A stretch of DNA of 64,000 nt from Lytechinus pictus. Taxonomy: Eukaryota. Position numbers and translations under genes: made by a program. The notes under the pieces were generated by a model that worked only from the letters and a program-made list of their open reading frames with translations, searched no databases and was not told the DNA's origin. Below, piece by piece: positions 39,500 to 62,549 of this stretch (positions are counted from its first letter, which is position 1; the number at the start of each line of letters is the position of its first letter). The stretch is from positions 28,644,001-28,708,000 of the forward strand of contig NC_087249.1 of the NCBI RefSeq assembly GCF_037042905.1. Reading direction: 5' to 3'.

Positions 39500-40226
39500 A
39501 TTGAAAGATAGATAGAGAAACAGACATACATATTCAAACAGATACATATAAGATAGATAATTATATATATAGATGGATGGATGGATGGATGGAGTGATGG
39601 ATGGAGAGATAAATGATAGTTGGTTATATTAATAAAACATAGATAGACAGACAGATATATAGATAGATAGATAAATAGAGAGAGAGATGAGACAGACAGA
39701 TAGATTGATATAGAAAGATAGACATATTCAAACAGATGGATATATATTAGATAAATAGATAGATAGATAGATACCTAGACAGACATACATATACATGTAG
39801 ATAGATAGNNNNNNNNNNNNNNNNNNNNNNNNNNNNNNNNNNNNNNNNNNNNNNNNNNNNNNNNNNNNNNNNNNNNNNNNNNNNNNNNNNNNNNNNNNNN
39901 NNNNNNNNNNNNNNNNNNNNNNNNNNNNNNNNNNNNNNNNNNNNNNNNNNNNNNNNNNNNNNNNNNNNNNNNNNNNNNNNNNNNNNNNNNNNNNNNNNNN
40001 NNNNNNNNNNNNNNNNNNNNNNNNNNNNNNNNNNNNNNNNNNNNNNNNNNNNNNNNNNNNNNNNNNNNNNNNNNNNNNNNNNNNNNNNNNNNNNNNNNNN
40101 NNNNNNNNNGATAGGTAGATAGACATATTTAAACAGATATATATATATTAGACAGAGAGAGAGAGAGAGATAGACAGATAGATATACAATGTAGGTAGAT
40201 AGACAGACAGACATGGATAGATAGAT

Positions 40227-53003: not shown

Positions 53004-53342
53004 CTAAGTCACAACCACAAGTTTCTTCATGTTAGCCATCTCTCCTCTGATCTCTTCAGCAATTAATGTCTGTTTCCCTTCTAGGACAGCTCTGAGGCTT
53101 GTCAAGCTCTCACTCAGTGATTTCAACCCCTCAGTATTCTCCTTCCTAAACTGTTCAATCAAAGCTCGCAGCTTCCGCTCCAGTCTGACCTGCTCAGCCT
53201 GTAGAGTGTCCTCAAACTCCCTTTTCATGTTCTTGAGCTCAGAGGCAACGTGGGACTTGGTATCCTGTTGTTCTCTTTCCAACTTCTCCAACTGCTTTTC
53301 CAGAGCACCCATCTTCTTTTTATAAGATTCCTCCATTTCATC
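53004..53342 (-). CDS. FAM81A: FAM81-like protein, last coding exon (112 aa + TAG)
   Basis: ttttccag|GAT acceptor, phase 0; GLKSLSESLTSLRAVLEGK resembles recalled FAM81A GFTAVYESIGSLRQVLEAK. Probably a single FAM81A/B pro-ortholog. Confidence 0.9.
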   Translation of the reverse strand, partial: DEMEESYKKKMGALEKQLEKLEREQQDTKSHVASELKNMKREFEDTLQAEQVRLERKLRALIEQFRKENTEGLKSLSESLTSLRAVLEGKQTLIAEEIRGEMANMKKLVVVT

Positions 53343-53595
53343 CTGGAAAATGGAAATACAATATAATTTTGTATGAGGTAACCCTAACAATGCAAACTAC
53401 AACCTGAAATATAAATAAAACAAGTACATGATAAAGTCAATCAAAGGATCTGAATCGAGCCATAATGAATTGAAAATTTATCAGAATTAATCGGATTTGA
53501 CCAGCATGGAATTAGTACAGTAACCTCCTAAATGAGAATACTACCAAAGAGTCATTCGTAAATACTTGAAGAAGATGAAATACATACATGTACAT

Positions 53596-54186
53596 ATGTT
53601 GTTTGAAGGTTTGCATGGTGGTATGTACAATCGCTGATGTAGTTTACGGTACACCATGTGAAGTGTTATAGAAACAGTGGATAGAAGAAGAGAAGAAATG
53701 GATAGGCGAGAAAATGGAGATTTGAGAGTAGAGTATTCTTTCTTGAAAGTAGTCCTGAAAAGGACTGTAAACCAGGAAAGATTGATGAGTTGAGAACAGC
53801 TTGAGTAGTAGAGCTAGTGAGGAGATGCTGGCTTGAGTCGGCGAGTAGAGATGATGAGTAGTAGAGAGACTCGACGTTTCGGGCAGCTTGACTGTCCGTC
53901 TTCAGGAGACTGAAGACGGACAGTCAAGCTGCCCGAAACGTCGAGTCTCTCTACTACTCATCATCTCTACTCGCCGACTCAAGCCAGCATCTCCTCACTA
54001 GCTCTACTACTCAAGCTGTTCTCAACTCATCAATCTTTCCTGGTTTACAGTCCTTTTCAGGACTACTTTCAAGAAAGAATACTCTACTCTCAAATCTCCA
54101 TTTTCTCGCCTATCCATTTCTTCATCTTCTTCTATCCACTGTTTCTATAACACTTCACATGGTGTACCGTAAACCACATCAGCGAT
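53596..54186. mobile_element. Penelope-like inverted pseudo-LTR (pLTR) pair forming a near-perfect fold-back
   Basis: Arms 53630-53905 and 53910-54186 differ by 1 substitution and 1 indel; 4-nt loop; 34-nt unpaired tail 53596-53629; flanking duplication atacatgtacat (53584-53595 / 54185-54196); HHR motif at the apex. Confidence 0.8.
53905..53952 (+). ncRNA. Minimal type I hammerhead ribozyme motif
   Basis: GGAGA-CTGAAGA-C-GGACAG-TCAAG-CTGCCC-GAAA-C-GTCGA-G-TC^TCTCT: full core, 5-bp stem I, stem II with one mismatch, short stem III with palindromic TCGA; predicted cleavage after C53947. Confidence 0.75.
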
Positions 54187-54592
54187 ACATGTACATGTAG
54201 TCATAACCTTTACGTGTATTGTGATTTTGTTGAAATCTTATGTATCACTCAAAAGAAACAATCAAAATTGTTGGTATAATGGACTAAATTTCCTTTTTGT
54301 AGCATGTGTTAGAAGTCACTTGTTGTGGCACGCAGGACATTTAATAGAGCAGCCAGCACATTTGAAAACATAAGGACTGGAGATAACACTTTTTTTTAGT
54401 TAAAATGTCAAAGATATACAAAGACTGTCACTTGAAAGAAGAGATTTCCTCTATACAGGGAAGCCATTAAACACTGCTACACTAATAAGTAAACAGAAGG
54501 ACAATTACTCCAGAGTCCCAACAAGTAAATCCCTTTCTACTTTCTTATGTGTTAGATTCTAATTAAAGTCATAACACAGGTTTTAACCTTAC

Positions 54593-54835
54593 CATTCTTT
54601 TGTCTCTCTTTGACCTTGCAGATTCCAATGACACTGTCATGTCCTTCTCCAGCTTGAACTGCGATGACAACCCTTGAGAACGAATGGTCTCTACTGTTTC
54701 ATTGGTTTCTTCAATCAGGTTCTTCAGCTTAACATCAATGATATTGAGGGCTTGCTGGAATTTATCCTCAGATGATTGCAATCTCGTGCTGTAATCTGAT
54801 TTATGCTGTTCACTGTTCTCTCCTAATTTTGAAAT
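54593..54835 (-). CDS. FAM81A: FAM81-like coding exon 5 (81 codons)
   Basis: tttttctacag|ATT...ATG|gtaagg, phase 0-0; ALNIIDVKLKNLIEE resembles FAM81A QLQLLDTKFKGTVEE. Confidence 0.9.
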
Positions 54836-55544
54836 CTGTAGAAAAAGAACAGTAAGAAATAGAATACTTAGCACGGAAACTAGATTTATACTTCCTACAG
54901 GTTCAAGGATGTAGCCAATAGCGAGTATGTATACAAGTCATGTGTTCATGCTTTAATTCCACTCAGTCTCCTAGCTGTGCATATTTTGTGCAGCACTGTG
55001 CATTTTGGGTGCATCATTTTACCCATAGCACGTAAGAACTGAGATGCCATCTGAAAAATGCGTTCTTCAAAGGAAAGGCTATAATTGGTGCCGGCGGCGC
55101 ACATACTAAAACGCCTGTGACGTCATAATAGCAAGCAGCAACAAGTGTGACCCCTCATCTTTGCGATCCCACATTATTTAAATGTGTGATGTTATGGACG
55201 TTGCAGGTACATGTGCAGATTTTTAAATGTGAGATGTTATGGACAATGCAGGCATCTTGGGTATTCACAAAAAACATGGTGTATAAGGCATGACAAGGTC
55301 TAGTAAATATTTTGGTGCCATACCATTTAAAACTTTCCAAGTGAGAAGAAGTAATTTAAATTCTTTACACTTCTGGATTGGCAACCAATGTTCCTTTGCA
55401 AGATATTTGTTATTCACCTTCTGTAAGACACATTGCTCCCAAGTCAAAAAGATTTCTGTGGTCCCAAGAGATTTGACTTACATGTAGGAAGAGTTACCTG
55501 TAGTAGACTTATTCTTTTGAATATTAAATCTTCAGCTGACATAC

Positions 55545-61259: not shown

Positions 61260-62549
61260 CTTGTAAGCTAGTGAACACTTTTTGCGAGAGTGATCACGAA
61301 TTTCCTAGAAAGCTAGTGAACACTTTTTGCGAGAGTGATCACAAATTTCCTTGTTGACCATAGTAGATTGCGAGACAAATGAATACCCTCTAGCGATTAT
61401 TTCAGTCCGCAATAATGAACCTATTTAGTAAAAGAAAAGATTATGGAAAGTCCACACGAAGAGGCGCATTGTAAATCGTAGGGTAGGCCCTATCGTCCCC
61501 TATGTCATGTTAAAGCAATAATGTAGTCTCGACTCCTTAACCCCGAAATGTTGAACATATATATTTTTTATATTCTTAAAGCTTATATTCTTATATAAAC
61601 TTCCATAAAGTTATCAACTTTAAATATGAGCGACGTTTATGATCGTTGTCATTTCTAGCATTATTGTATTTTTTTTTCCATTGCGGATTGATTTCACACA
61701 TTTTTCTATGTTTTATTATTGCAAAGCACTACTTTACCCACTTGGACATGTTTGCAGATATGTTCATATGTTTCTTGTCTTCGATTACTCATCATGAAAA
61801 GGTATGTTTATACTCTAAACACTCACATTTATATTTCTTGCGTGATATCTGATGAATAAAATAAATAAATTCGATTTTTCACACGCAGCCTCTCATATTT
61901 TCCTTTTTAGTCTAATACAATCAGACACGTTGATTTTGTTTACTCCATTCAAACCCCATTTTTACATCAACAAATAGCATTTAAAGCATACTTTGCAAAA
62001 TTATCACTTTAGATAAGTATTCTATAAAAAATCAGAATATTGAAATACAATGCCGAAATTACTTAGTTACTTCAATTTTTATTTTCGGACAAGGGTCTCT
62101 TTCGTTGGAATATCAATGAAAGGTGTCCTTTAAAGGGCACCGTGTTCTAGATAGAGGAAATAATGAAAATTTCGATTTTATCCAGGTATGTTTGTGAATC
62201 TTCAATTTTTGTTCTCCTTTTACCTCATAAAGTAAGCTCCATACATCATTTCTACTATCGGTAATAAACAACAAATTATTTGACCTCTGGCTCCATTAAT
62301 TGAAATAATTGATTTTATGAAAAGTCGTCATTTCGAAATAAAGGTTCAGGTGACGATGAAGACTAAATATTTTTCCGATTAATAATAATATCGATATCAA
62401 ACAATGACAATGTTGCGGACTTGGAAGACAAGATTGCCTTCGTGAAACGGAAAGCGCTGATTTGTCGCCAATCTTCCTATCTCGGAAGAATGGTCCTAGC
62501 CCTAGGACGTTCCTACGTATCGCTCATCTCGTCGTGCAACAGGCCCCAG

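Follow-up and report, generated by a model that had tools for sequence, protein, structure and literature searches.

The last intron of a FAM81A-like gene of Lytechinus pictus holds a 589-bp insertion made of two mirrored copies of one sequence, which meet at a hammerhead ribozyme motif. How did such a structure arise, to which class of mobile DNA does it belong, and does the ribozyme do anything where it now lies? We addressed these questions in a 64,000-nucleotide stretch of L. pictus contig NC_087249.1 (the window; coordinates are window positions unless stated otherwise). We note that 301 positions of the window (39809-40109) are N, an assembly gap or masked stretch within a simple-repeat-rich region. 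Our analyses indicate that the insertion consists of two head-to-head copies of the short end, with the ribozyme, of a Penelope-like element (PLE), a typical product of that class and not a new kind of mobile unit.

Two near-identical arms, a one-sided tail and a target-site duplication

A repeat search resolved the insertion into two inverted arms of 276 nt each (53630-53905 and 53910-54186) on either side of a short apex, with an exact direct repeat at the outer boundaries. Its parts, from left to right, are these:

53584-53595: left copy of the 12-bp target-site duplication ATACATGTACAT, from the repeat search; present as one 12-mer in L. variegatus
53596-53629, minus strand: 34-nt tail, by which the 3′ end of the copy with minus-strand sense is longer; on the left side only, missing from the right arm
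53630-53905, minus strand: left arm, a sense copy with a hammerhead core at 53868-53905 for which stem I is impossible
53737-53766, minus strand: mirror of the histone-3′-end-like module of the right arm
53905-53952, plus strand: minimal type I hammerhead motif with stem I GGAGA/UCUCU, from a descriptor search
53906-53909, plus strand: 4-nt apex loop GAGA, the 5′ strand of stem I on the plus strand only
53910-54184, plus strand: right arm, a sense copy without the tail; complementarity to the left arm runs 2 nt further, into the duplication
54049-54078, plus strand: histone-3′-end-like module, a 6-bp stem with a UUUC loop (54049-54064) followed by CAAGAAAGA (54070-54078)
54156-54184, plus strand: 5′ half of an AC-rich terminal stem-loop (CAUGGUG...CACCAUG), from folding
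54185-54196: right copy of the target-site duplication ATACATGTACAT, an exact direct repeat of the left one

Complementarity is 100% over the inner parts of the arms (53692-53905 and 53910-54123; 214 nt identical) and 98% over the outer parts (53630-53691 and 54125-54186; 62 nt), the two differences in 276 nt being a substitution, A53641 for the G of the family, and a 1-nt indel, the additional T54124. An initial annotation of this DNA had reported inverted copies with two differences, a GAGA loop and a 34-nt tail on one side, and the repeat search upheld every one of these structural statements; the 12-bp flanking duplication that it also reported is exact. The apex GAGA is either filler at the junction or the end of the template RNA, its final 4 nt. 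Because UCUC lies upstream on the minus strand, where GAGA is needed, the hammerhead core there is left without stem I. When the insertion is folded as plus-strand RNA it forms a single hairpin (-560 kcal/mol, z = -61).

The AC-rich terminal stem-loop is whole only in the tailed copy (53596-53659, minus strand; -11.2 kcal/mol, z = -2.1). The two ends of the insertion stand in different relations to it: the untailed end falls within the loop, and the tailed end lies 19 nt past the stem-loop. By analogy, this structure may correspond to the PAc stem-loop at which reverse transcription of PLEs starts.

The unit also contains a module that resembles the 3′ end of histone mRNAs. Its 9-mer CAAGAAAGA, which in histone pre-mRNAs of sea urchins is the element recognised by U7 snRNA through base pairing, has only 3 occurrences in the window and begins just 5 nt past the stem, a spacing shorter than that in histone genes. 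The Rfam Histone3 model scores the unit at 15.9 bits, below its gathering score of 34. With both the gathering score and the canonical spacing failing, we rejected this module as a histone mRNA 3′-end signal and treat it as a resemblance only.

The insertion lies in a FAM81A-like intron and is absent from L. variegatus

The open reading frames on either side of the insertion gave the identity of the host gene, which we took from a HMMER search and from the named members of the cluster:

53007-53342, minus strand: last coding exon of the FAM81A-like gene, matching residues 253-364 of a Diadema setosum protein
54593-54838, minus strand: preceding exon of the FAM81A-like gene, matching residues 171-252 of the same Diadema setosum protein

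The last exon is 97% identical to an L. variegatus FAM81A-like protein. Because the flanking minus-strand frames are consecutive exons, the element lies in the last intron of the gene, and the location in a FAM81 intron proposed previously is thus borne out by exon matches on both flanks.

To the sister species we compared the window through Lytechinus DNA obtained by way of FAM81A-like and PLE proteins (L001-L003). L001, the L. variegatus locus, aligns colinearly with the window and is 87-93% identical to it; there, the window segments ending at 54185 and starting at 53595 adjoin each other with an overlap of 12 nt, and the site consists of a single 12-mer (ATGAACAAGTAT on the gene strand) with no element between. 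A contig from a public sequencing run, which we take to be from L. variegatus because its flank differences and SNPs equal those of L001, likewise joins 53583 straight to 54185, the configuration of an empty site. An empty site with one 12-mer indicates that the insertion is genuine and specific to one lineage, as opposed to an artefact of assembly. The initial annotation had named a fold-back artefact of assembly as one of the outcomes that would undo it; the comparison with the sister species instead argues for a real insertion.

The plus strand carries a minimal hammerhead motif of the PLE type

Read on the plus strand, 53906-53952 divides into GAGA, CUGAAGA, C, GGACAG-UCAAG-CUGCCC, GAAA, C-GUCGA-G, UC and UCUCU. 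The core CUGANGA...GAAA...UH is present (CUGAAGA at 53910-53916, GAAA at 53935-53938, and GUC at both 53940-53942 and 53945-53947); C53917 is an extra nucleotide, G53918 pairs with C53934, and helix II (53918-53923 with 53929-53934) is 6 bp long and includes one A.C mismatch. Metazoan PLEs are described as having minimal hammerheads with a G10.1-C11.1 pair, a long helix II and a helix I of 4-5 bp, together with palindromic positions 15.2-16.2 (Cervera & de la Pena 2014, PMC4209133). Of these published features, the G10.1-C11.1 pair, the long helix II and the short helix I are found at 53905-53952. A descriptor built from the published features finds one site in the window, which is confined to the plus strand once helix I must have 4 bp or more, in agreement with the earlier statement that the plus strand alone has a complete hammerhead. 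The same descriptor finds 0 sites in 300 random 64-kb sequences, a count that serves as an upper-bound argument and not as a blind test, since the descriptor was written after the motif had been seen.

The Infernal search that had been proposed as a check did not recognise the motif. None of the Rfam hammerhead models (Hammerhead_1, Hammerhead_3, Hammerhead_II, HH9 and HH10) gave a match, whether gathering thresholds were applied or the limit was relaxed to E ≤ 10 for segments of 801 nt and 61 nt; the only hits were generic hairpins of miRNA models and a weak Histone3. Minimal PLE motifs are reported to escape canonical descriptors (PMC4209133). Folding predicts that the catalytic fold, at -5.7 kcal/mol, is about 10 kcal/mol less stable than the minimum-energy fold at -16.2 kcal/mol, where pairing between GAGACU and AGUCUC leaves C3, U4 and the cut site buried. 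The stem I of this copy may moreover be accidental, because its GAGA strand is the junction itself and only about 5% of the L. variegatus family depth covers position 53909.

The initial annotation had referred to the minimal type I hammerheads with palindromic stem III that PLEs carry, and it expected a cut after C53947. The assignment to the PLE type of minimal hammerhead stands on the features listed above, but stem III in that reading (2 bp, loop GUCGA) is not palindromic. In an alternative reading ACGU (53938-53941) is palindromic and the cut would follow C53942, at the cost of helix I, which does not form in this copy. By analogy with the second PLE of the window, described below, we consider the candidate cut after C53942 at least as likely as the candidate cut after C53947, because that element has the same layout, GAAAGCUC with palindromic AGCU, where the unit has GAAACGUC. 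The 18-nt spacing between core and GAAA is also identical in the two families, and the position just past C53942 recurs where arms begin in L. variegatus copies.

The unit belongs to a very abundant family with a recurrent outer end

To place the unit among its relatives, we aligned contigs of four sequencing runs to 53300-54500; these included X2 (L. variegatus), X4 (L. pictus RNA) and X1. In X2, 3,198 contigs match the element, and the summed family depth is 1.3-6.3 × 10^5 as against about 30 on the flanks. Although such depth is not a copy number, it shows that the family is very abundant in L. variegatus. The absence of related copies had been named as a finding that would count against the element, and the multitude of matching X2 contigs answers it. 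Of the 31-mers of the arms, 32-68% are present in the runs of four organisms and a seawater metatranscriptome.

The outer end of the unit recurs across loci. Among X2 contigs, 22 end at 53596 and 13 at 53600 and then run into unrelated AT-rich DNA, and contigs from the runs of two other organisms (X1 and X4) end at 53596 and 53602, again in unrelated AT-rich flanks. The recurrence of ends at 53596-53602 therefore identifies the tailed end as a true terminus of the family. Other family copies in the X2 contigs are inverted pairs that have different inner junctions and the same outer end, and many are single arms. Two positions bear on how the arms in the FAM81A-like intron are related: A53714 is a private variant found in both arms, almost all family contigs having G, and at A53641 the left arm alone departs from the family. 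The shared A53714 and the left-only A53641 therefore indicate that the arms come from one template lineage, with their two differences acquired at or after insertion.

The family is also transcribed. In the L. pictus RNA run, depth is 68 over the exon up to its boundary and 0 on the intron flanks, with 200-2,700 over the family, and the family RNA must therefore come from elsewhere. We note that L. variegatus contigs by the hundred show identity of at least 99% to the L. pictus copy, although between the species the surrounding intron differs by about 10%; either the source of the family has remained nearly unchanged since the split of the two species or the family is active in both.

Searches for a coding parent were negative within their scope. 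The 64-kb window holds no further copy of the unit, and neither a family copy nor a parent bearing RT and EN is present in the 67 kb of Lytechinus DNA in L001-L003. The unit itself has no ORF for an RT plus GIY-YIG EN, its small ORFs have no counterpart among called genes, and public metagenome and viral contigs gave no exact-pattern match for the ribozyme or the stem-loop box. One open frame runs through the right arm, which is not unusual for a pyrimidine-rich strand. The sole ATG of the unit (53596-53657 on the minus strand, 54158-54184 on the plus strand) opens MVYRKPHQRLYIPPCKPSNNI, which resembles the PLE RT motif SVYRKPTHTDxYI; we rejected VYRKP-H--YI at the 3′ end of the unit as a coding remnant, since no more than 4-7 residues align when profiles are compared (probability 2% and 0.5%). 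A tRNA-derived SINE was rejected too, there being no tRNA-like part in the unit.

A second PLE in the window and its relatives

The window contains a PLE of another family, with two L. pictus copies in L002:

59788-61441: second PLE, with RT/EN coding remnants; its sequence is unrelated to the unit
L002, 9050, minus strand: L. pictus copy of the second PLE
L002, 11341, plus strand: L. pictus copy of the second PLE

All of the named Lytechinus PLE proteins that we found belong to this family. In the window and in the two L. pictus copies, TATAAATA lies 36 nt before a minimal hammerhead of the U3-A8 type (UUGAUAA ... GAAAGCUC). We observed that the L002 copies keep helix I (UCAC/GUGA) and that the window copy has UCUC; separately, the window copy carries a 45-nt tandem duplication at 61260-61349.

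Inner ends of the arms in L. variegatus copies

The inner ends of the family copies were drawn from L. variegatus contigs, in which nearby short direct repeats can shift the ends of alignments. Among the best-supported 15 of 50 junctions, an arm start at 53943 recurs: one joint, from 53872 to 53943, is exactly symmetric and occurs in 2 contigs, in one of which a 9-nt filler separates the arms, and two further joints use 53943. Within the same 15 of 50, one fold-back has its apex at 53947/53948. Arm ends in L. variegatus contigs also recur at 53901-53914. As read from these junction sequences, the arm starts at 53943 and 53948 resemble run-off cDNAs of self-cleaved RNA, a likeness that is suggestive only. 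It is conceivable, if somewhat doubtful, that the arm ends of the family mark where the reverse-transcribed RNAs had their 5′ ends, the ribozyme 5′ edge, at which this copy and several L. variegatus copies end, corresponding to a transcription start that would place the ribozyme first in the RNA, and the starts after GUC (53943 and, once, 53948) to self-cleaved RNA. Should sharp genome-wide peaks show this to be true, they would constitute the first in vivo evidence of hammerhead-cleaved Penelope RNAs as templates, a role that earlier studies in vitro and by RNA-seq were unable to demonstrate.

Origin of the insertion

Insertions of PLEs are highly 5′-truncated, often have an adjacent inverted truncated copy and carry a tail of 30-40 bp at one end only (Craig et al. 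2021, PMC8557442). Purified PLE protein, a predicted dimer, cuts and extends both DNA strands and prefers AT-rich DNA, and reverse transcription starts at two internal sites in an AC-rich stem-loop, with a spacing equal to the length of the tail (Frangieh et al. 2024, PMC11167929). The insertion in the FAM81A-like intron has a target duplication with an empty site, an inverted copy, a one-sided tail and a hammerhead motif in the repeated end. We therefore think it likely that it represents one event of a PLE family abundant in Lytechinus, made by a two-strand mechanism with two start sites, and, as part of the same reading, that this event took place in the L. pictus lineage after its split from L. 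variegatus. A young inverted insertion of the PLE type with a 3′ tail had indeed been one of the proposals for this locus, and the duplication, the empty site, the tail and the minimal hammerhead motif all agree with it.

From these features we infer the following course of events. A dimeric PLE enzyme would have nicked both strands, 12 bp apart, at the AT-rich site in the intron, and each free 3′ end would have primed reverse transcription of element RNA. Initiation at the outer start site would give the arm with the 34-nt tail, and initiation at the inner site, 34 nt upstream, the arm without it. Both cDNAs would then have run for about 276 nt, to 0-4 nt upstream of the hammerhead core, where template jumping would have joined their ends head to head, leaving GAGA between them; repair would have duplicated the 12-bp target. 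The template RNA may have begun just upstream of the ribozyme, in which case the start sites would lie about 276 and 310 nt into the RNA and the cDNAs would have ended by run-off at its 5′ end. Internal initiation would regularly yield short copies of this sort as by-products, and they would have no promoter. Random truncation is disfavoured because both cDNAs stop at one place, 0-4 nt before the core. The arm ends at 53901-53914 and the position of TATAAATA in the second PLE point to a defined 5′ end of the template; by analogy with TATAAATA in that family, transcription would start about 5 nt before the ribozyme. The copy was dead on arrival, since the copied segment has no ORF and no upstream promoter.

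Two other readings take the same sequence features to be the work of different processes. The unit of about 310 nt might be a non-autonomous, ORF-less family in its own right, retrozyme-like or SINE-like, whose own masters make the RNA that PLE enzymes copy in trans. Its very high copy number and discrete length would suit such a family, as would the outcome that L001-L003 yielded no ORF-bearing parent, and a 2026 preprint (Li et al.) derives animal non-LTR retrozymes from PLE pLTRs. We nevertheless regard this origin as unlikely: the unit has neither a tRNA-like part nor its own promoter upstream, copies are not arranged in tandem and contig ends at 53596 enter unrelated DNA, the ribozyme is of the minimal PLE type and not the canonical type I of retrozymes, and internal initiation on full-length PLE RNA would yield identical short by-products. 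The initial annotation had left the choice between an ORF-less retrozyme-like unit and an extreme PLE truncation. Membership among retrozymes does not hold, with no tandem units and no canonical type I ribozyme, and the evidence favours a third reading, that of run-off copies from the ribozyme 5′ edge to the sites at which reverse transcription starts. It is also improbable, in our judgement, that a single target-primed cDNA snapped back via the 4-nt loop and copied itself, the arms then being parent and daughter strands. The near-perfect palindrome, the tiny loop and the private variant at 53714 common to both arms are what snap-back would produce, but the tail would have been copied as well and the missing 34 nt needs an extra step, whereas a PLE enzyme with two start sites acting on two strands accounts for the asymmetry directly.

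We give far less credence to readings that dispense with reverse transcription or with one of the two arms. Fold-back transposons are known in sea urchins, and a DNA transposon or MITE of this fold-back kind would, without any retrotransposition, leave long terminal inverted repeats within a target duplication. The ends of the element are asymmetric, however, owing to the 34-nt tail; many copies are single arms, and pairs vary at the inner junction and keep the outer end; and the unit has a PLE-type ribozyme and AT-rich targets, all of which makes this reading very improbable. Palindromes are likewise a known failure mode of assemblers, and a single-arm insertion mirrored during assembly could give a similar picture, but here the flanks join the 3′ ends of the unit, one tailed and the other untailed, the arms differ at two positions, and the duplication is exact and the site empty in the sister species. 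There is accordingly only the slightest chance of such an artefact.

Local effect and significance

What the two-strand PLE insertion does in its present place depends on the strand that is transcribed. The host pre-mRNA is the minus strand, in which the arms are predicted to form a 276-bp duplex and the ribozyme copy would be without helix I. The predicted ribozyme would be idle here, because it is locked in the 276-bp duplex when a transcript spans both arms and is without stem I in the minus-strand pre-mRNA. The hammerhead is thus probably a family feature that was carried along and does nothing at this locus. An earlier suggestion that hairpin and ribozyme may act as a self-silencing switch gains no support beyond trivial hairpin stability, and RNA of the host gene, which is minus-strand RNA, lacks stem I. 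The sole plausible local effect would be that of a long dsRNA hairpin within the intron. Placed in the last FAM81A-like intron, a perfect 276-bp hairpin is a possible substrate for editing or for small RNAs, with L. variegatus as a natural control.

The insertion itself is an ordinary, dead copy of a retroelement. It is also a very clean natural example of the model of two strands and two start sites that in vitro work has suggested for PLEs, its cleanness lying in the exact empty site of the sister species, the one-sided tail and the ending of both cDNAs at one point. An abundant family with discrete inner ends could, moreover, reveal whether PLE template RNA is cleaved by the hammerhead in vivo.

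Comparison with known systems

Known PLE insertions (Evgen'ev & Arkhipova 2005; PMC8557442; PMC11167929) resemble the one described here in their head-to-head inverted copies, the tail at one end (34 nt here), the target duplication, the AT-rich target, the AC-rich terminal stem-loop at the starts of reverse transcription and the hammerhead motif in the repeated end. They differ in that here only the terminal 276-310 nt are present on both sides, with no RT/EN ORF attached, and in that both copies stop at the ribozyme 5′ edge and not at random truncation points. Relative to the minimal hammerheads of PLEs (PMC4209133), the motif has an A.C mismatch in helix II; the palindromic ACGU reading leaves this copy with no helix I, and the earlier reading gives a helix III of 2 bp and a non-palindromic 5-nt loop. 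The second PLE of the window and its L002 relatives share with the unit an inverted partial copy, a target duplication (16 nt) and a minimal hammerhead of the same layout. In contrast to the unit, the second PLE has the U3-A8 core variant UUGAUAA and RT/EN coding sequence, and its inverted copy ends near the predicted cut site and not at the ribozyme 5′ edge. Non-LTR retrozymes (Cervera & de la Pena 2020, PMC7229834; Li et al. 2026 preprint) are alike in being ORF-less units of about 300 nt with a type I hammerhead that are abundant, transcribed and linked to PLEs. Retrozymes, however, form head-to-tail tandems, have canonical ribozymes with loop-loop contacts and give circular RNAs, whereas the unit in the FAM81A-like intron forms an inverted pair, carries a minimal motif and ends in unrelated DNA.
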